From contig JAPDFW010000070.1 of the NCBI GenBank assembly GCA_028826165.1, positions 1,178,001 to 1,242,000 on the forward strand: a DNA stretch of 64,000 bases, read 5' to 3'. Position 1 is the first letter of the stretch. Every line of letters begins with the position of its first letter. Under the pieces are notes generated by a model, which was not told where the DNA came from, ran no database searches, and worked only from the letters and a program-made list of their open reading frames with translations. Below, piece after piece: positions 20,070 through 40,590 of this stretch. The DNA comes from Anaeramoeba ignava BMAN (lineage: Eukaryota; Protista; Anaeramoebae). The translations under genes and the position numbers were made by a program.

Positions 20070-22106
20070 ATGTGGAAAATAATATTAATATTATTATTAC
20101 TATTCATAAAAGAAACGCAAACTAAATCAATCCACGATACGATTTATCAAGACATTGGTGGGTTTACGGGAATGCAATTATTAAATAAAAACGGAGATTA
20201 TGGAGGAACAAGTGGATTTGATCCACTTTATGGAGAACTTTATTTAATTGAAGAAGAAAGCGATTTCGAAAAACTTATCAACGACCCACCATCTAAAAAG
20301 CTTGTGCTCGTTCTTAACGCAGAATTCTTTAGTTTGTTTGCAACTTCTCAATACAATTCACAAATTTGAATTTTTCTAATTTTAATGAACAAAATGAAAA
20401 GTTCTAAATATTTAGATCGTCTTCCGAACAAAATAACGATAGCAGGGGTGATTTTGCTCCCAGGAAACAAACCTGGAACGGGATACTCTCCAGAGATGAC
20501 TTACCCATTGAAGGCTTCCTCCTTGCATCCAGAGAGCGATTACGAATGGAATTCAATTGGAAATGGAGATCTTTATAAAAAATATTTTTTCCCTATTTTA
20601 ACGTTTCCACTTCAAGGAAATTTTCAATTTATCAAAGATATGGCAAAACAAAACAAAAGAGATCTTGAGTTTTTTGAACCACGAAATGGGGCTGTTTTTG
20701 ACATTTTCATGCAAGCAAACGAAGATTCAGAAACTTGTTTAAGAAGAAAAACATGTGTTCCAATTGGAGGTCAAAGTGTGTGGGGTTTTATCGGAGGAGA
20801 ATACAACAAGTCTAAGGAGTACATCATGATAACTACGCCTCTTGATACGCGGAGTTCCTTCCCTTATCTATCTCCTGGATCAGAGTTCCCATCTTCGGGA
20901 ATTGTTGCGCTACTAAGTGCAATTGACGGAATTATTTCCTTTGCCAATTCCAATAACGCAACGGAATTTTACTCTTCCCTTAAGCGCCAAATCATGTTTG
21001 GATTCTGGGACGGGGAAAGCTTTGGACACATTGGATCTCTTAAGTTCATAAACGATGTCAAATACTTCGATTGCAAAGAATGGAATGATTCTTCACACTC
21101 GTCTTGCAATCAGCCTTTTCGCTATTCAATGGCGTTCAAAGATCTTGATCTCTCGAAGTTGACAGAGATTATCGAGCCAAATCAGGTTGGTTTATACACA
21201 GGAAACCCAAACAACACGTACCAATCTCAACTTTATACACACTACGAAAAGGAAAATTTCCAAAGTTTAGTGCTTGCCGAGAAAATCATGATGGTCTCAA
21301 TCAACTCCTTGAAAATCATGAACCTCTCCACTGTGGAGTATCCAAGTCCGCACACTCCTGGTATTCCGCCCTCCTCGTCGGAATCTTTTGTGAGAAAAAT
21401 CAAATCAGATCTGCCTGTTGTGGTTCTTACTGATTATCCCAGTCAATTTTCAAATGCATTTTATTCAAGTGTCTTCGATGATATATTCAACATCGAGACT
21501 CAACAGATTGCTGGCGCTGCCTCTCTTTTGTTGAGAACGGTGTATATGGAAGCAACGGGTTGCAATCCAGAGGAAATCCCTGAAAATCTTGCAGTTAATG
21601 AGACATTTATTCGCGATCTTATGTTTTGCTTTTCGTTCACTTACTACTGCCAATATTTTGTGGATATTCTCGGCATTCCTTTTAATGTGCCTTCCTCGAA
21701 TTATCCTGGTCTGTTTTCTGATACAAATGTGCCGATTCGTTCAAAGTTCCTTCATGATTTTATTACTTATTTAACTTTGGTTCAAAAATCTTCAGAATTT
21801 CCTTCTTGCAAAAGTGGATATGACTGTAATTCTTCTGAAAATTGCATTGTTGGTAAGTGTTATCCACGAATTGTTTATTTTCATCCTTCTTATTCCAACA
21901 ATGTTGAGTATGATTATAAACAAAAAGAATATAAAGTTGTTGAATCTTATTTTCCAGATGATTTATGGGTTGAAAGTGATTGGAAGAAAATCCAAATCCA
22001 AGTTTATCAAGGAAATAGTAAAAATGTTGATATTTTGGTTTTTTGTGTTGGAATTTTTTTAATTTTATTGGATTGTTTTATGATTAAATTTTTCAAGTTG
22101 TTTTAA
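20070..22106 (+). CDS. NCSTN: Nicastrin (gamma-secretase subunit)
   Basis: Signal peptide, SETCLRRKTCVPIGGQSVW, GESFGHIGS (DYIGS-equivalent), IPPSS, WVESDW and a C-terminal TM. One short intron at ~20332-20415 with ambiguous exact sites. Confidence 0.88.
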
Positions 22107-23642: not shown

Positions 23643-25978
23643 ATGATAATTTATTCACCAAATTATTTCAATAAACAAAATGCAAAATTACTCTCTTTAG
23701 ATATAAATATCAATGGAATATTCATAGCAATTTCATTTGATACAGGAATTATTGAAATTTGGGAAATGGATCCTATTAAAAAAATAATGAAACATCCCAA
23801 AAAATCAAATCAAGAAAAAAATAACGAAAAAAATAAAGAAAAAAAAAAAGAAAAAAATCTTTCTTTAATGAAACACAGTGGAAGTGTTCAATGTGTTAGA
23901 TTTTCACCCAAAACTGGTCGTTATTTAGCTTCCAGTTCAGAAGATGGTGAAATTCGTATTTGGAGTACAAATTCAGAGCTTATAAAAGAAAAATGGACAA
24001 TTCGATCCACTTTTCAAAGAAAAAATGGTTAGTTCAACTTTTTTTTAGTTCAAATTTATTTATTTATTTAACTTTTTTTGTTATTAAAGATGTTTGGTCC
24101 ATTTCTTGGTCTCCTGATGAAAATAGATTTGTTGTTTGTGGAATGGATCCAAATATTTTAGTTTGTAATCCATTTACTGAAAAAGAAAATGGTATTGATT
24201 TTGATTTTAATTTTGATTTTAATTTTGATTTTAATTTTAATTTTTGGATTTTTGGATTTTGATATTGATTTTTTTTAGAGAGAGAAATTATACTTCAAGG
24301 CCATGAAACAATTGTTAATACAGTTTTATGGGATCCAAAAGGAAGTTTTATTTTGAGTCAAGTAAAAAATTTTTTCATCAATAAAATCAAAAAGAAAAGA
24401 AAAAATAAATTTTATTAATTTCTTTTCTTCCAAAAAATCAAAAAGGATCTTTCTTGTGTTAGAGTTTGGGAAACTAAAAATTTTAGTTGTATAAATATTA
24501 TTTCATCCATTTTTGAACCTTCTTTAGAAAGGACTTTTTCAAATAGAATCAGGTATATTTTATTTTGAATTAATTTCTAAGCAACAAAATAATATTAAAT
24601 ATTAATATCCAAAATATTCAAAATATTCAAAATATTTAAAAAATATTCAATAAATATTAAAAATATTCAATAAATCAAATATTCAAAATATATTTAAAAT
24701 ATTTAAAATAAAATATTCAAAATATTCAAAATATTCAAAAATTTAAATTAATATTCAAAATATTTCTTATTCAAAAATATTAAAAATAATTCAAAAATAT
24801 TCAAAATATTCAAAATAAAATATTTCAAAATATTCAAAAATATTCAAAATTATATTCAAAATATTCAATAAATATTCAATAAATATTCAAAAAATATTAA
24901 AAATATTCAAAAATATTCAAAATATTCAAAATATTCAAAAATATTAAAAATATTCCAAAATATTCAAAAATATTCAAAATATTTAAAATATTCAAAATAT
25001 TCAAAATATTCAAAATATTCAAAATATTCAATAAATATTAAAAATATCCAATAAATATTCAAAATATTCAAAATATTCAAAATATTCAAAATATTCAAAA
25101 TATTCAAAATATTCAAAATATTCAAAATATTCAAAATATTCAATATATTCAAAATATTCAAAATATTCAAAATATTCAATAAATATTCAAAATATTCAAA
25201 AAAATTAAATTTAATAAAATATTCAAAAAAATATCAATAAAAATAATTCAAAATATTCAAAAATATTCAAAATATTCAAAATTTCAATAATTCAAAATAT
25301 TCAAAATATTCAAAATATTCAAAATATTCAAAATATTCAAAATATTCAAAAAAAATATTCAAAATATCCAATAAATATTCAATATATTCAAAATATTCAA
25401 AATATTAAATTATAAAATATTTAAAATATTTTAGTGCTTCGAAAGATGGAAAATTTTTTGCAATAACAAATTGTGTTGTGAATAAAAGATTTACATCTTT
25501 AGTTTTCCCAAGATCAACAATAACTAAGAAAAAAAAAAGAGGAGTAATAGAAGATGCAGATATTTTTTATGGACATAAAGCAATGGTTGATCAAGCAATA
25601 TTCAATCCAGTTATGTTTCAAAAAAAGAAAAACGCAATAAGATCTACTGTTTCTTGTATTGCTTTAGCAAGTATAGATAGTACAATAACTTTTTGGATGC
25701 ATTCTCATCAAAATCATCGTCCTCGTGCAATTATTAAGCAAGCATTTAACCAGAAAATCACTGATATGTGTTGGTGTCCTTCTTCAGGTAATTTGTTTGC
25801 TGCTTGTTCTACTGATGGAACTGTTTTATTCTTTAAAATCCAAAAAGAAGATTTAGGTGATTTTACAAAAATCAAAAATCAAAAAAAACGCGAAAAACAA
25901 AACCAAAATAATCAAAATAAAAAATCTTTAAAAAAATCAAAAAAAAATACAAAATCAAAAACAAATCAAAATAACTAA
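23643..25978 (+). CDS. HIRA: HIRA/Hir1-like histone chaperone, WD40 domain only (~406 aa)
   Basis: Exons 23643-24027, 24090-24191, 24279-24361, 24446-24552 and 25435-25978 join in frame (1221 nt). HIRA-like segments occur in order: HSGSVQCVRFS, LQGHETIVNTVLWDPKGSFILSQ, FYGHKAMVDQAIFNP, RPRAIIKQAFNQKITDMCW and ACSTDGTVLFFKIQKEDLG. Confidence 0.78.
24590..25425. repeat. Intronic 9-mer microsatellite (AAAATATTC)n
   Basis: Fills intron 4 of the HIRA-like gene. Confidence 0.9.
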
Positions 25979-26047: not shown

Positions 26048-26626
26048 TTATAAAATAAAACATTTATTTTTGGATTGATTTTTTGATTTTGGTTGAACAA
26101 TAGCTTTAACTGCTTCATCAAATAAATTTCCCACATTTTGTTGAGTTTTAGCAGAACATTCAATATATTCAATAGCATTAATTTCATTTGCTAAATCATA
26201 TCCAAGTTGATAACTAATTGGATATAATCCTTTTTCTTCTAAACTATTAATAGTATCTTGATCATCTCTTAAATCTAATTTTGTTCCAACAAGAATAAAT
26301 GGAGCATTTGGACAATATTGATTAATTTCAGGAATCCATTTAAGTTTTAAATTATCAAGAGAAGTATTCGAAACGATAGAGAAACAAAGTAGGAAAATAT
26401 CAGTTTGAGGATATGATAATGGACGAAGTCTATCATATTCTTCTTGAGCTGCTGTATCCCATAATCCTAAATTAATTGGTTTTCCATTAATCATTAATTG
26501 TTTTGAGTTTTGATCAAAAAATGCAGGATAATTCGAATCTGGAAATCTATTTTCTGAATATGAAATCAATAAAGAAGTTTTTCCAACTCCATGATCTCCA
26601 ACAACAACTAATTTAATTGTTTGCAT
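26048..26626 (-). CDS. Atypical Rho/Rac GTPase, copy 1 (intronless)
   Basis: [33 protein letters not shown], Rho insert, ECSAK and CaaX CFIL. Confidence 0.95.
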
Positions 26627-26746
26627 TTTTTTATTTAAAAAAGAAAATAAAAAGAAAAAAAGAAGAAAAAAATGAAAAAATTTTTTTGTTAATTCATTCG
26701 AAAAAAATTTAATTTTTATTCCACTTTTTATTTCATTTTTAATTTT

Positions 26747-27337
26747 TTATAAAATAAAACATTTATTTTTGGATTGATTTTTGGATTGATTTCCTCTTTT
26801 TGAATCAACAGCAATTTGAATTGCTTTATCAAATAAATTTTTCACATTTTGTTGAGTTTTAGCAGAACATTCAATATATTCATTAGCATTAATTTCGTTT
26901 GCTAAATCAAATCCTTCTTGATAACTAATTGGAGATAATCCTTTTTCTTCCAAATTATTGATAGTATCTTGATCATCTCTTAAATCTAATTTTGTTCCAA
27001 CAAGAATAAATGGAACATTTGGAGTATGATGATTAATTTCAGGAAGATATTTAGCTTTAATATTCTCAAAAGAAGAAATAGAAATCAAAGAGAAACAAAG
27101 TAGGAAAACACTAGTTTCAGAATAAGATAAAGGACGAAGTCTATCATATTCTTCATTACCAGATGTATCCCATAATCCTAAAACATAATAATTTTCTTTA
27201 TATTTAATACTTGCTGCATATCCATCAAAAACTTTTGGAATATAATCTGCTTGAAAACTATTTGTTGTATATGAAATGTATAAACAAGTTTTTCCAATTC
27301 CATCATCTCCAACACAAACTAATTTAATTGAATCCAT
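26747..27337 (-). CDS. Atypical Rho/Rac GTPase, copy 2 (intronless)
   Basis: [26 protein letters not shown] and CFIL; 4-aa duplication in the tail. Confidence 0.95.
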   Translation of the reverse strand: MDSIKLVCVGDDGIGKTCLYISYTTNSFQADYIPKVFDGYAASIKYKENYYVLGLWDTSGNEEYDRLRPLSYSETSVFLLCFSLISISSFENIKAKYLPEINHHTPNVPFILVGTKLDLRDDQDTINNLEEKGLSPISYQEGFDLANEINANEYIECSAKTQQNVKNLFDKAIQIAVDSKRGNQSKNQSKNKCFIL

Positions 27338-27456
27338 TTTTTATTAATAAAATAAAATAAAAAGAAAGAAATGAAAAAAATGAAAAAAGTTTTTTTGTTA
27401 ATTCATTCGAAAAAAATTTAATTTTTATTCCACTTTTTATTTCATTTTTTAATTTT

Positions 27457-28035
27457 TTATAAAATAAAACATTTATTTTTGGATTGATTTTTCCTTTTTG
27501 ATTCAGCACCAATTTGAATTGCTTTATCAAATAAATCTTTGACATTTTGTTGAGTTTTAGCAGAACATTCAATATATTCATTAGCATTAATTTCGTTTGC
27601 TAAATCACATCCTTCTTGATAACTAATTGGAGATAATCCTTTTTCTTCTAAATTATTAATAGTATCTTTATCATCTCTTAAATCTAATTTTGTTCCAACA
27701 AGAATAAATGGAACATTTGGACAATGGTGATTAATTTCAGGAAGATATTTAGCTTTAATATTCTCAAAAGAAGAAATAGAAATCAAAGAGAAACAAAGTA
27801 GGAAAATATCAGTTTGAGGATATGATAATGGACGGAGTCTATCATATTCTTCTTTACCAATTGTATCCCATAATCCTAAATTATAATATTTCTCTTTATA
27901 TTTAACATTTGCTGAATATCCATCAAAAACTGTTGGAATATAATCTGTTGGAAAACTATTTGTTGTGTATGAAGCGTATAAACAAGTTTTTCCAACTCCA
28001 TCATCTCCAACACAAACTAATTTAATTGAATGCAT
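27457..28035 (-). CDS. Atypical Rho/Rac GTPase, copy 3 (intronless)
   Basis: [26 protein letters not shown] and CFIL. Confidence 0.95.
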
Positions 28036-28137
28036 TTTTTATTGATAAAAATAAAATGAAAAAAGAAAGAAAAAAATGAAAAAGTTTTTTTTGTTAATTC
28101 AAATTTATTTCAATTCGAATTTTTGAATTTCTTTTTT

Positions 28138-28851
28138 TTAGATTTTCTTTTTTGGAAAAAATTTGTCGAATAAATTCTGATAAATCTTAAACTCGAGATC
28201 ATTATAAACACAAAACAAAATCTTTTTAGTATTTTTTCGATTATCTGGATCATCCAAAAATTTTCTTGTATAACCCAAAGCAATCTCGCAAGCATCAACC
28301 ATAGGATAACCATAATAACCAGTAGAAATACAAGGAAAAGCAATAGAAGAGATATCCTTTCCATCCAAATACATCAAAGAATGTTTGTAACAAAATTCCA
28401 ATAGTTTCGGTTGAGGATTTCCCGAATCATCTAAATAGGGACCAACAGTGTGAATAATTGCTTTAAAAGGAAGATTATGAGCACCTGTTATAACTGAATA
28501 TCCTGTTCGACATCTTGCTCCAAATGAATCTTCTGGAAACTTTTTTATACACTCTTCCCGAAGTCCTGGGCCTGCTTTAGCATGTATAATTTGATCTATT
28601 CCTCCTCCTCCAAGTAATGTTTCATTTGCTGCATTTACAATTGAATCAATTTTTTCACTATTTCTTCGGTTGTTGATTTCCACTATGCTTCCTTTATATA
28701 TCTCCACTAACTTATTAATTTCTTCGTCTACTTCTGTATATACTTTTTTTTCCTTTAGAATTCTTTCATAATCTTTTTCGTTTCTGTTTTTTAATTCATC
28801 TGAATGATCTTTTCTGTTTTGATTTGATTCTTGATTTGCTTGTTTATCCAT
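28138..28851 (-). CDS. MacroD/YmdB-type macrodomain ADP-ribosylhydrolase (intronless)
   Basis: IVNAANETLLGGGGIDQIIH, IIHTVGP and SIAFPCISTGYYGYP motifs. Confidence 0.93.
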   Translation of the reverse strand: MDKQANQESNQNRKDHSDELKNRNEKDYERILKEKKVYTEVDEEINKLVEIYKGSIVEINNRRNSEKIDSIVNAANETLLGGGGIDQIIHAKAGPGLREECIKKFPEDSFGARCRTGYSVITGAHNLPFKAIIHTVGPYLDDSGNPQPKLLEFCYKHSLMYLDGKDISSIAFPCISTGYYGYPMVDACEIALGYTRKFLDDPDNRKNTKKILFCVYNDLEFKIYQNLFDKFFPKKKI

Positions 28852-28929
28852 TTAAATCAATTTTAAAAAATAAAAATGAAAAAAATGAAAATAAATTTAT
28901 TCCAACTTTTTATTTCAATTTTTAATTTT

Positions 28930-29508
28930 TTATAAAATAAAACATTTATTTTTGGATTGATTTTTCCTTTTTGATTCAGCACCAATTTGAATTGCTTTAT
29001 CAATTAAATCTTTCACATTTTGTTGAGTTTTAGCAGAACATTCAATATATTCATTAGCATTAATTTCATTTGCTAAATCAAATCCTTCTTGATAACTAAT
29101 TGGAGATAATCCTTTTTCTTCTAAATTATTGATAGTATCTTGATCATCTCTTAAATCTAATTTTGTTCCAACAAGAATAAATGGAACATTTGGACAATAA
29201 TGATTAATTTCAGGAATCCATTTAGCTTTAATATTTTCAAAAGAACAAGTAGAAATCAAAGAGAAACAAACTAATAAAACATCTGTTTCAGGATATGATA
29301 AAGGACGAAGTCTATCATAATCCTCTTTACCAGCTGTATCCCATAATCCTAAACTGTAATATTTCTCTTTATATTTAACACTTGATGCATATCCATCAAA
29401 AACTGTTGGAACATAATCTGTTGGAAATCTATTTGTTGCATATACAAAGTATAAACAAGTTTTTCCAATTCCATCATCTCCAACACAAACTAATTTAATT
29501 ATATTCAT
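28930..29508 (-). CDS. Atypical Rho/Rac GTPase, copy 4 (intronless)
   Basis: True start is ATG 29508 (MNIIKLV), giving 192 aa like its neighbours. [26 protein letters not shown] and CFIL. Confidence 0.95.
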
Positions 29509-29629
29509 TTTATATTGATAAATTTTAAAAAATGAAAAGAAAAAAGAAAGAAAAAAATGAAAAAGTTTTTTTGTTAATTCATTCGAAAAAAATAAATTTA
29601 TTCCACTTTTTATTTCATTTTTTAATTTT

Positions 29630-30208
29630 TTATAAAATAAAACATTTATTTTTAGATTGATTTTTCCTTTTTGACTCAGCACCAATTTGAATTGCTTTAT
29701 CAAATAAATCTTTGATATTTTGTTGAGTTTTAGCAGAACATTCAATATATTCATTAGCATTAATTTCATTTGCTAAATCAAATCCTTCTTGATAACTAAT
29801 TGGAGATAATCCTTTTTCTTCTAAATTATTAATAGTATCTTTATCATCTCTTAAATCTAATTTTGTTCCAACAAGAATAAATGGAACATTTGGACAATAA
29901 TGATTAATTTCAGGAAGATATTTAGCTTTAATATTTTCAAAAGAAGAAATAGAAACCAAAGAGAAACAAACTAATAAAACATCTGTATTTGGATAATTTA
30001 AAGGACGAAGTCTATCATATTCCTCTTTACCAGCTGTATCCCATAATCCTAAATTGTAATATTTCTCTTTATATTTAACATTTGCTGCATATCCATCAAA
30101 AACTGTTGGAATATAATCTGTTGGAAATCTATTTGTTGCATATACAAAGAATAAACAAGTTTTTCCAATTCCATCATCTCCAACACAAACTAATTTAATT
30201 GATTGCAT
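29630..30208 (-). CDS. Atypical Rho/Rac GTPase, copy 5 (intronless)
   Basis: [26 protein letters not shown] and CFIL. Confidence 0.95.
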
Positions 30209-30299
30209 TTTATATTAATAAAATAAAATAAAAAGAAAGAAAAAAATGAAAAAAATGAAAATAAATTTATTCCAACTTTTTATTTCAATTTTTAATTTT

Positions 30300-30878
30300 T
30301 TATAAAATAAAACATTTATTTTTAGATTGATTTTTCCTTTTTGATTCAAGTGCAGTTTGAATTGCTTTATCAAATAAATCTTTGATATTTTGTTGATTTT
30401 TAGCAGAACATTCAATATATTCAATAGCATTAATTTCATTTGCTAAATCAAATCCTTCTTGATAACTAATTGGAGATAATCCTTTTTCTTCTAAATTATT
30501 GATAGTATCTTTATCATCTCTTAAATCTAATTTTGTTCCAACAAGAATAAATGGAACATTTGGACAATAATGATTAATTTCAGGAATCCATTTAGCTTTA
30601 ATATTCTCAAAAGAAGAAATAGAAATCAAAGAGAAACAAACTAATAAAACATCTGTTTCAGGATAAGATAAAGGACGAAGTCTATCATAATCCTCTTTAC
30701 CAGCTGTATCCCATAATCCTAAACTGTAATATTTCTCTTTATATTTAATATTTAATGCAGATCCATCAAACATTTGTTGAATATAATCTGTTGGAAAACT
30801 ATTTGTTGCATATGAAATGTATAAACAAGTTTTTCCAATTCCATCATCTCCAACACAAACTAATTTAATTGAATTCAT
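30300..30878 (-). CDS. Atypical Rho/Rac GTPase, copy 6 (intronless)
   Basis: Start ATG 30878 (MNSIKLV). [26 protein letters not shown] and CFIL. Confidence 0.95.
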
Positions 30879-37218: not shown

Positions 37219-40200
37219 ATGCAATTTCAATCCCTTTCTATTTTACAAAATTTAATTAAAAAAAACCAAATTGAATTAATCAAAAATTTTTTAAAAGAAA
37301 ATGAATTAACAAATAAAGATCTTTCAAAATGTTTAACATTTTCACTAATGAATTCATCAACAACACTTCAGATTGTCGAATTACTAATACAATCTGGAGC
37401 AGATATCAATCACAGAAACCCAAAAAGTAGAAGAACAGCTTTATTAACAGCAATAAGACATTCAAGTTCATCAGAAATTGTTGGTTTTCTTATTAAATCA
37501 GGAACAAATTTAAATTTAAATTTAAAAGATCGGAGGAAAAGAACAGTTTTATTTTATCTGATGAAATATTTGCGTTCAGATACCTTGGAGTTACTCAATT
37601 TGATATTAGAAAAGGGAGTTGATATTAATTATAAAGACAATTTACTTCAAACTCCTTTATCTTATGCAATTATCAATCAACAACCTATTGAAGTTGTCAA
37701 ATATCTTATTGAAAAGGGGGCAGAGACTAATATTCTTAATATTCATCAAGAAAATCTGCTCCATATTTGTGCAAAATACAATCCAAATGTTGATTTACTT
37801 CAATTATTAATTGACAAAGGAATCCAAATTAATAATACAACAAAATATCTCAAAACTCCTCTTAGTTATTTAGTAGTAAATTACCCAAAAACCATACCAG
37901 AAATCAAATTTCTTGTTTCAAAAAGAGCAAATATTGCCAAATCTTTATTCTCTTATGTTATGGATCCAAAATTTTTTGAAGCTATCAATTTTGTATTTTC
38001 TCTTTCTTCGGTTTCAATCAATCAAAAAAATCAGTCAAATCAAACATTACTTCATTGTGCATGTCTCAGAAAGAACAACATCAAAATAATTGAGGTGATT
38101 ATACAAAATGGGGTTGATGTTAATGTAAAAGATTCAATGGGAAATACAGCTCTTCATCTTGCTTGCCAAAATGATTTAGAAAATGAAGTTATCAAGTTAT
38201 TGATTTCGTCAGGAATTGATCCTTCAATTACAAATACATCCAGCAGCTATGCATTGGAGTATTTTCACAAATGGAATAGTAATGAAAGTGAGGAAATATC
38301 TGAAATAATGGTTCTTCTTTTTAAAGGAATTGATTTGGCTGGAATGAAATTACCTCGACTGAGTGAAAATTCCTGGAGAAATTTGTTTAATAACAATAAA
38401 TACAATTCTGAGATTATCAAAATTGTAGATCAAATCAGTGATGCTTATGATTCCTCTCGTTATTTTTATAGAAGAGTTTCAATAGAAAATTTTCTTATAT
38501 ATTCTTATAAGAATCTTGAAGTCTTTAAGTTTTTGTTTGAAAAATCGTTGAAATCAAAAAAAACAAATTATTCCAACATCGTCTCTAAAATTTCTAATTA
38601 TGTTGATAGTTCTGCGGCGATCATATATATTCTTGAATCACTTGAAAATCATCCTGAAATAGATATTGATGTCAACACGGCACTATTTAATTTTTCTTCT
38701 ACTTCTCATGGAGTTGAGCAACTTAAATTGTTTATCAAAAAAGGAGCCAATGTGAATACTCAAAACGATCAAAAAGTAACAGTTTTAATGCGTGAATGCC
38801 ACCATTATCCATCGTTTTCAAATATATCTTTTCTTATTGAATCGGGAGCAAATGCTTTTTCAAGAGATAACAAAGGAAACACAATAATTCACCATTTCTG
38901 TAAATCAAGTACTTCATATTTCCAGCCTGTTGATATTCATGAACTGATCCAGTTATTCAAATCAACAGGATTAGATATAAATGATACAAATGACGAAAAA
39001 GAAGATGCTTTGATTTGCAGCTGTTCAAATTTTTCTTTTCCAGATGAATTGATTAGATATTTAATTGAAAATGGAGCGAATCTGAATTCAACAAATAAAT
39101 CGGGAATGTCTGCATTTTCTCTATATTTGCAGAACAAAAAGCATCGTTTGGAAACAGTTAAATTGTTTATTGAAAAAGGAATCAACCAGAAAACTATTGA
39201 AACTAGTTTTGTTAATTGGATCCAAAACAAAATTGCTATTAATCAATCCCATCCTTTGGAAACATTTAAATTCTTTTTTGAAAACAATATTTTAGAAAAC
39301 AAACAAAAAATTTTATTTGAAAACTCAGTAGTTCTCCATTATTTGTTAGATTATTACAATATGAAAGGAGAGGAATTCAATGATTTACTGCTTCTATTTA
39401 TTAATAATGGGGCTAATTATGAAGTTGAAATGTATCAGAAAAAGACGCTTCTTCATTCAATTTGTACTAAAAACTCATCATTTATTCCATCAATTAAATT
39501 TTTACTCAACCTTAATTTGGATGTTAATGCACTTACTAGTTCTCGACAAACTCCTTTATCACTTGCTTGTAGATATGCAACTTCAGAAGAAATCATTCCA
39601 ATTTTACTTTCGCAAGGTGCAAATCCAAATTATCCAGAGAAGTGTATTGATTTAATCACAAAAAACATTACTTTGATTCAATATAATTCCAAATGCATAG
39701 AATATTTGCTTTGGTATGGAGCAGAATGGAAAAATCAAAAAGTAATATTTTTCTAAATTTATCCAAAAAAAAAAAGATAAACAATCAATTTAATTAATTT
39801 AAATTCTTATTAACAAAAAAAAAAGTCATTTAATTCTTATGAAAGAAAAATAAATCAATTATTCCTTAAAACATATAAAAGTTATCAAGAAGATTTTTTA
39901 AATTTATTCAAAAGACAAGAATTAACTGATTATAAAATTCAATGTAAAGATGGATTTATTTTGGTTCATAAATTAATTATTACTTTAAGATTATATTTGG
40001 AAAATGAATCAGAAAAACAAATTTTAGGGAAATTCTTAAACTTTGCTTTTGAAACATCGAAAAAAGAAATGGAAATTATCATTGAATTTCTTTATTCAGG
40101 AATTATTGAAATGAGTAATTATGAAGAACATTTTCAATTTCTTGAAAAATTTGCTCAAAATTTAAGTTTTCCTAAAAATTGGATTACTCAAAAATCAGCA

Positions 40201-40590
40201 AAAATTGGATTAATTCATGATTTAGAAAGACTTTATCAAGATCAAGAATCAAAAGATTTCACAATTATTTTTTCAGATGAAACAACAATTAAAGTTCATA
40301 AACTAATTTTAATTGCAAGATCTAATTTATTTAGAGGAATGTTTCTTAGTGTTGTTGATAATTCCAATCAAGTTCATGATTACAGTGAAATTCCTTCAAA
40401 AACAATGAAAAGTTTAATTGATTTTCTTTATTTAGATTCATGTTCTTCGTTTGAAAATTTTGAAATTGAACATTTTCAAAAAGCAAAAGATTATTTTCAA
40501 TTAAATGAAAATTCCTCTTTAAATTTATTCTTTTCTCAATCTTCATTAGCAAATCGATATTTTAATGATAAATATCTCAATAAAAAATAA
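37219..40590 (+). CDS. Ankyrin-repeat + tandem BTB/POZ protein
   Basis: Exons 37219-39741 and 39826-40590 join in phase 0. Many GADIN/TPL ankyrin repeats, then two BTB domains (TDYKI..VHKLII; KDFTI..KVHKLILIARSNLFRGMF). Confidence 0.9.

Follow-up and report, generated by a model that had tools for sequence, protein, structure and literature searches.

The stretch of DNA analysed here (the window, 64,000 nt) covers positions 1,178,001 to 1,242,000 of contig JAPDFW010000070.1 of Anaeramoeba ignava BMAN, and the subject of this study is a set of six Rac-like genes that occupies 26048-30878 of the window on the minus strand. The genes are intronless, run head to tail and comprise 192-196 codons each; they were named R1-R6, and their coordinates were counted from the homologous Met (Table 1). 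In the original prediction they were described as six tandem paralogues with open reading frames (ORFs). All six ORFs are indeed open, but the array is not uninterrupted, as a macro-domain gene is located between the third and fourth copies. The array spacers (90-120 bp) diverge by 7-17% from unit to unit and contain numerous indels, AATAAA-type signals after the stop codon and a conserved A/T-rich leader ahead of the ATG. The spacers on either side of the macro gene, 28036-28137 and 28852-28929, are also homologous to the array spacer, in halves. This gene is oriented like the array copies, and since it has a complete array-type spacer upstream and the promoter-proximal half of one downstream, it fills one unit slot of the array. 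The G+C content of the window is about 20%, and the published genome of the strain contains 80.65% A+T (PMC11550330).

Table 1. Features of the Rac-like array and its surroundings (window coordinates)
Feature	Position	Strand	Characteristics
R1, Rac-like, 192 aa	26048..26626	(-)	H12, N32, A35, N40, A60, Q61; KCFIL end; most divergent copy
Repeat-unit spacer, about 120 bp	26627..26746	(-)	homologous spacers at 27338-27456, 29509-29629, 30209-30299
R2, Rac-like, 196 aa	26747..27337	(-)	D12, K35, S59, N61; in-frame 4-aa GNQS insertion in tail
R3, Rac-like, 192 aa	27457..28035	(-)	D12, T35 kept, I59, K61
Macro-domain gene, 237 aa, MacroD/YmdB type	28138..28851	(-)	PF01661, E 7e-36; between R3 and R4
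R4, Rac-like, 192 aa	28930..29508	(-)	D12, T35 kept, K61; ORF extends upstream to 29769
R5, Rac-like, 192 aa	29630..30208	(-)	D12, T35 kept, K61
R6, Rac-like, 192 aa	30300..30878	(-)	D12, Q34, Q35, M36, S40, K61; ORF extends upstream to 30932
Nicastrin	20385-22106		
CAF1B/HIR1-type WD40 gene	23643-25978		
Ankyrin-repeat ORF, 845 aa	37219-39756		
BTB ORF	39961-40590		same strand as ankyrin ORF, about 200 bp after it

All six copies matched the Pfam Ras family (PF00071) with E values from 2e-45 to 3e-47. The alignment of R5 with human Rac1 is gapless over residues 1-192 of both proteins, including the Rho insert (about 123-135; E 1.3e-76), thus Rac1 numbering can be used directly. The best PDB matches of R5 were all Rac1/2/3 (E 1e-76), with Cdc42 behind at 5e-67. 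The identity of the array to Rac1 is about 60%, and as this identity is gapless, the Rac fold is certain. Trp56 is invariant across the six copies, the G1, G3, G4 and G5 motifs of a Ras-type G domain are present with the lone exception of the Ala at G60 of the DxxG motif in R1, and each protein ends with a K/R-rich basic tail followed by CFIL. With the G domain, Rho insert, W56, basic tail and CAAX box all found, the array is assigned on its sequence to the Rac subfamily of the Rho family. The CFIL box together with the basic tail predicts geranylgeranylation and membrane binding.

Residue states at the catalytic and switch positions were read from the protein alignment of the six copies and from the codons, and are listed in the order R1-R6. 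The substitutions previously claimed at positions 12 and 61 were confirmed in full: position 12 is H, D, D, D, D, D (CAT in R1, GAT in the other five) and position 61 is Q, N, K, K, K, K (CAA, AAT and four AAA), while R1, the copy that retains Q61, carries G60A (GCT). The GKT, TKxD (TKLD, 115-118) and SAK (158-160) motifs and the CFIL box are likewise intact in all six copies, as had been stated. Invariant positions include G10, G13, G15, K16, T17, F37, D38, W56, D57, T58, E62 and Y64-L70, besides TKLD, SAK and KCFIL. At the position of Thr35 the six copies have A, K, T, T, T and Q, thus the otherwise invariant switch-I Thr is gone from R1, R2 and R6; Asn39 is replaced by G in five copies and by Q in the remaining one, and Tyr40 is gone from R1 and R6. 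R3-R5 retain Thr35, Phe37, Asp38 and Tyr40. Canonical Rac1, either human or that of A. ignava, resembles the array proteins in length, gapless alignment, Trp56, Rho insert, TKLD, polybasic tail and a CAAX box of the geranylgeranyl type, whereas the array differs from it in G12D/H, A13G, N39G, Q61K/N or G60A, a changed β2-β3 turn and a variable switch I.

The functional significance of these positions in the Ras and Rho families is well established. The arginine finger of the GTPase-activating protein (GAP) is sterically hindered by any side chain at position 12, Gln61 places the attacking water, and hydrolysis is classically lost in the G12D/V and Q61K/L alleles. Thr35 ties switch I to Mg2+ and the γ-phosphate, Tyr40 is required for CRIB effectors, and the G60A mutation of Ras blocks the GTP-induced change of switch II and traps the guanine nucleotide exchange factor (GEF). 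The changes seen in the array, G12D/H, Q61K/N and G60A, are ones that abolish both intrinsic hydrolysis and that stimulated by arginine-finger GAPs in Ras, Rac and RhoH, as the original prediction stated for positions 12 and 61, and the motifs for nucleotide binding and prenylation remain. RhoH, with the same Asn at position 61 as R2, holds GTP that stays unhydrolysed with or without p50RhoGAP (PMC2565660), and half of the mammalian Rho proteins are atypical, that is, mainly GTP-bound and otherwise regulated (PMC8305917). Because the position 12 and 61 alleles are hydrolysis-dead in Ras/Rho and RhoH provides a precedent, the prediction of GTPase deficiency for all six copies is well founded. 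The original interpretation is thus partly supported: the further step to constitutively GTP-loaded, signalling proteins is weaker, and such a signalling state appears doubtful for R1, R2 and R6 because their Thr35 is gone.

The best explanation overall, which we hold with moderate confidence, is that the locus is a lineage-specific, Rac-derived array encoding proteins that would be nucleotide-binding, prenylated and hydrolysis-deficient. GTPase deficiency and GTP loading, like prenylation and the way in which the proteins act, are inferred from the sequence. The array proteins would still bind guanine nucleotide and be geranylgeranylated at CFIL beside the basic tail, while the hydrolysis machinery would have been lost by the replacement of Gly12 with Asp or His and by that of Gln61 with Lys or Asn, or of Gly60 with Ala. 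Such proteins would be insensitive to arginine-finger RhoGAPs and would hydrolyse GTP very slowly, and their activity may be set by expression, stability or localisation instead of the GEF/GAP cycle. Of the six, R3-R5 come closest to putative Rac mimics that would be constitutively GTP-bound and effector-competent. For R1, R2 and R6 the canonical closed GTP state is probably out of reach, and these are more likely switch-less binders or competitors, which may act by titration of GEF, guanine nucleotide dissociation inhibitor (GDI) or effectors; R1, owing to its G60A change, would resemble the GEF-trapping Ras G60A mutant. Classical Rho machinery is encoded in the A. ignava genome, with at least four PBD/CRIB genes and about 71 RhoGAP exon matches (a CRIB/PBD domain lies at C82:143746-143901 and a RhoGAP domain at C75:134564-135001), and a RhoGDI is listed for the species in the supplement of the genome paper.

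Several points weigh against this explanation. A 'GTP-locked active' state common to all six proteins is made less likely by the absence of Thr35 from three of them, and Asp12 beside the γ-phosphate could weaken the binding of GTP rather than lock it. Rap and Rheb, which are without Gln61 or Gly12, still cycle via Asn-thumb GAPs. Finally, the whole-gene maximum-likelihood (ML) estimate of ω, the ratio of nonsynonymous to synonymous substitution rates (dN/dS), is 0.22-0.92 depending on the codon-frequency model, which leaves the strength of the overall constraint uncertain.

The maintenance of the genes was approached by a decay simulation, in which each copy's own number and spectrum of random point changes was applied to the R2-R6 consensus. 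The simulated probability of remaining stop-free ranged from 0.002 (R1) to 0.33 per copy, and the product over the six copies was 6.6e-7. There is no frameshift in the coding sequences, where the single indel is an in-frame 12-nt insertion, although the homologous spacers show 3-46 gapped columns per pair. Simple dN/dS values according to Nei and Gojobori (NG86), which were about 1-3 for many pairs, were dropped as a measure because they are unreliable under extreme AT bias, and were replaced by ML codon models with the spacer divergence as a neutral yardstick. Our own implementation of the codon models matched the likelihood given by IQ-TREE exactly (lnL -1600.267, ω 0.316). The likelihood-ratio test rejected ω = 1 in favour of ω < 1 with p about 1e-7 under the Goldman-Yang model (GY-F3x4) and p 0.018 under the Muse-Gaut model (MG-F3x4). 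The two-class model M1a was preferred over M0 (twice the log-likelihood difference 93 with GY-F3x4 and 75 with MG-F3x4) and placed 51-61% of the codons at ω 0-0.03 and the remainder near 1; in the M2a fits 57-59% of the codons were at ω about 0.03-0.05. Comparison of M2a with M1a gave p 0.51 (GY-F3x4) and p 0.037 (MG-F3x4), hence positive selection is not established, and gene conversion could inflate the M2a result.

The constraint is distributed unevenly along the protein. Among R2-R6, the nonsynonymous divergence of the N-terminal half is 0.08-0.14, near the spacer divergence of 0.07-0.17, while that of the C-terminal half is 0.013-0.05, and ω of the N-terminal half exceeded that of the C-terminal half 2-4 times under every model. 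By column counts, the difference between the two halves in the share of nonsynonymous-variable codons was insignificant (Fisher p 0.35). The sites of the relaxed class were concentrated within residues 20-61, which correspond to the end of α1, switch I, β2-β3 and the start of switch II (23/42 vs 28/150 elsewhere, Fisher p 1.6e-5). Position 61 belongs to the relaxed class (P 0.98), and positions 35 and 39 are in the fast-evolving class too. The open frames, the lack of frameshifts, ω below 1 and the constrained site class together indicate that the genes are not decaying: neither neutral evolution nor the stops or frameshifts typical of pseudogenes were found in the array. The genes are maintained: their nucleotide-binding core and C-terminal lobe are frozen, and the face that binds partners changes fast.

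In a quick ML tree, R2-R6 formed a clade with 99% support, within which R4-R6, the copies beyond the macro gene, made up a younger sub-clade. R1 was joined to the array weakly, and the whole group was positioned among the Rac-like genes of A. ignava itself. The phylogeny, which had been proposed as a check, thus supports the earlier suggestion that the array arose independently of the atypical Rho proteins of animals: its nearest relatives are Rac paralogues of the same genome, and a word search of public proteins with R5 found nothing outside the A. ignava genome above 66% identity and no near-identical protein of Dictyostelium. Among the best 120 public matches, the window's own proteins were the only ones with both a non-Gly residue 12 and K or N as residue 61, and one metagenomic protein had E12/M61. 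Orthology to the Rnd or RhoH clades was not found, the nearest sequences being the A. ignava Rac paralogues and Rac1. Considering these results, the array genes are best regarded as lineage-specific, Rac-derived, young tandem paralogues.

The substitutions common to the copies reflect shared ancestry, that is, one to three events and not six independent ones. As R1 retains ancestral Rac traits, namely β2-β3 and Gln61, the simplest order of events would be an initial change at position 12, followed by Q61K in the common ancestor of R2-R6 and later by K61N in R2, with G60A as a separate event in R1. The canonical Rac of A. ignava shares about 82-84% identity with public Rac1-like proteins and 65% with R5, and it has lineage-specific C-terminal motifs in common with the array. 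At least seven protein-identical copies of it (L007-L013) were found on six contigs, labelled C99, C136, C82, C67, C70 and C1. The canonical copies sit within blocks of 2-3 kb, which share 86-95% identity with one another and are each bordered on either side by tandem repeats of about 145 bp. Four identical tandem copies of Rac1 have been reported in A. pumila.

The search of the A. ignava genome yielded at least 87 Rho-like matches, one of which (C84:263071) is identical to a protein listed under A. ignava at NCBI, and 72 distinct, fully alignable Rho-like domains were included in a census. Gly12 and/or Gln61 was missing in 61/72 of them: both residues were gone in 38, Gln61 alone in 15 and Gly12 alone in 8, while 11/72 domains kept both. 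The array is thus not singular and is the least degenerate member of a genome-wide trend. The clusters of Rac-derived pseudo-GTPases on contigs C61 (about 45 genes), C83 and C137 resemble it in being tandem, in the same genome and devoid of the catalytic residues. However, these genes have lost Gly15 and/or NKxD, and often the CAAX box as well, so their nucleotide binding is probably gone, whereas the array keeps all nucleotide-binding motifs and the prenylation box. The combination of an acidic residue 12 with Lys61 was found in the present array, in three C83 genes and in C52:3709, while of about 55 domains in which residue 12 is not acidic just one had Lys61. This association has at most two or three independent origins and is to be taken as a lead, not as a result.

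Some further features of these relatives were recorded. The divergent Rho-like genes of C61 form two large tandem arrays (C61:204000-236200 and C61:108700-114200, including L031-L033, L048 and L049). Most of them have GCILN or KCITN ends, and their switch II is degenerate (DTARxx, DPTGGE); in several genes Q/N-rich low-complexity inserts replace the N-terminal half, and some copies contain stop codons. At C137:218315-219565 and in C83 some continuous ORFs of 461-475 aa comprise two Rho-like domains, which may be fused double-Rho proteins or neighbouring genes without an intervening stop. A single Rho-like gene at C81:369447-370019 has the P-loop GDSQVGKT and the switch II sequence DTTGKE; its P-loop matches that of animal Rnd3/RhoE (GDSQCGKT), and the gene would be a convergent atypical Rho. 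Rho is nowhere mentioned in the main text of the A. ignava genome paper.

It could be supposed that the array proteins still cycle, either with a non-canonical GAP of the Asn-thumb type or by hydrolysis in cis, where a Lys61-Asp12 pair would stabilise the transition state, under the control of private regulators. The recurrence of the acidic residue 12 with Lys61 suggests such a compensated pair, and its weight is reduced by the small number of independent origins. The A. ignava genome contains many RhoGAP-domain matches, and the same possibility of a private GAP has been raised in a review of RhoH (PMC2565660). However, position 61 is relaxed and reads Q, N or K in the array, unlike a newly fixed catalytic residue. 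We know of no Asn-thumb GAP specific to Rho proteins, which also counts against this possibility, and in Ras/Rac the arginine finger is blocked by any side chain at position 12. Cycling of the array proteins is therefore considered unlikely, if still the strongest competitor of the hydrolysis-deficient array.

The macro-domain gene brings in a different possibility. Its nearest named relatives are Naegleria proteins with 45-52% identity, and six COG2110 macro-domain genes appear in the table of candidate laterally transferred genes in the supplement of the A. ignava genome paper. As a MacroD/YmdB-type gene situated inside the array behind an array-type spacer, it might encode an ADP-ribosylhydrolase that erases ADP-ribosylation, and the array would then be a toxin-resistant or decoy Rac set in a host-bacterium arms race. 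Thr35, Asn39 and Gln61 are residues modified by bacterial toxins, positions 35, 39 and 61 all fall in the fast-evolving class, and the effector face is the fastest-evolving region of the protein. Anaeramoebae live alongside intracellular or symbiosome bacteria, and in A. pumila a Legionellales symbiont has genes for Fic proteins as well as Rac1 genes captured from its host, which counts in favour of decoys. Nevertheless, the relaxation of 3/4 classic toxin-target residues gave a binomial p of about 0.06 against the whole protein and about 0.4 against residues 20-61, thus the enrichment is indistinguishable from the general variability of the switch region. Moreover, the signal of positive selection is not robust (M2a vs M1a), the linkage of the macro domain is one case, and none of the symbionts or prey of A. 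ignava is known to have a toxin that modifies Rho. Considering these, a role of the array in toxin resistance is judged rather improbable.

A slim chance is likewise given to the more far-reaching claim that either Asp/Glu12 and Lys61 form a co-evolved charge pair, serving cis-assisted hydrolysis or a salt-bridge lock, or the array and its macro eraser constitute an anti-toxin decoy or resistance locus; the charge pair, if true, would mean a new nucleotide-state logic. That the copies are recent duplicates drifting to pseudogenes, with the catalytic substitutions as the first lesions of relaxed constraint, could be read from the NG86 dN/dS of about 1 or above for many pairs, from nucleotide differences spread near-evenly across the three codon positions and from the broken copies in related arrays of the genome, but it is very improbable in view of six open frames against a joint expectation of about 7e-7, the absence of frameshifts next to indel-rich spacers, ω significantly below 1 with over half of the codons strongly constrained, and the invariant nucleotide-binding motifs and CAAX box.

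The genes flanking the array (nicastrin, the WD40 gene and the ankyrin-repeat and BTB ORFs) are ordinary eukaryotic genes, and proximity is their sole tie to it. Some Rho proteins are degraded via BTB adaptors. The ankyrin-repeat and BTB ORFs (37219-40590), about 6 kb from the Rac array, may form one spliced ankyrin-BTB gene.

The hydrolysis-deficient array proteins can be compared with known systems. RhoH and Rnd1-3 resemble them in the Rho-family G domain, the Rho insert, the CAAX box and the replacement of the Gly12 and Gln61 equivalents. RhoH and Rnd are GTP-bound, GAP-resistant and regulated by expression or stability, as is predicted for the array proteins. There is no orthology between them, since the array has about 60% identity with Rac1 and is nested among the A. 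ignava Rac paralogues; its Asp12/Lys61 combination differs from the residues of RhoH and Rnd, and it is also distinct as a young six-gene tandem set with a diversifying effector face and three copies without Thr35. The array proteins are thus predicted to be atypical GTPase-deficient Rho proteins by functional class only, with an independent origin. The oncogenic alleles of Ras and Rac (G12D, G12V, Q61K, Q61L) and Ras G60A affect the same positions, and G12D and Q61K are identical to common cancer alleles. However, the oncogenic changes are somatic gain-of-function mutations, while those of the array are germline, fixed, combined in one protein and selectively maintained.

Atypical GTPase-deficient Rho proteins are familiar mainly from animals. 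We regard the array as new, independently evolved members of this known class, predicted to be GTPase-deficient. The atypical Rho solution would thus have arisen independently and recently in a deep-branching anaerobic protist, where it is still diversifying, with substitutions known as oncogenic alleles (G12D, Q61K). The copies provide a natural paralogue series, which varies in the presence of Thr35 and in the residue at position 61 (Gln, Asn or Lys), for probing the function of non-cycling Rho proteins. Together with the census, where both catalytic residues are kept in only 11/72 domains, the array suggests that in Anaeramoeba Rac has given rise to a large family of proteins that do not cycle or have no switch.

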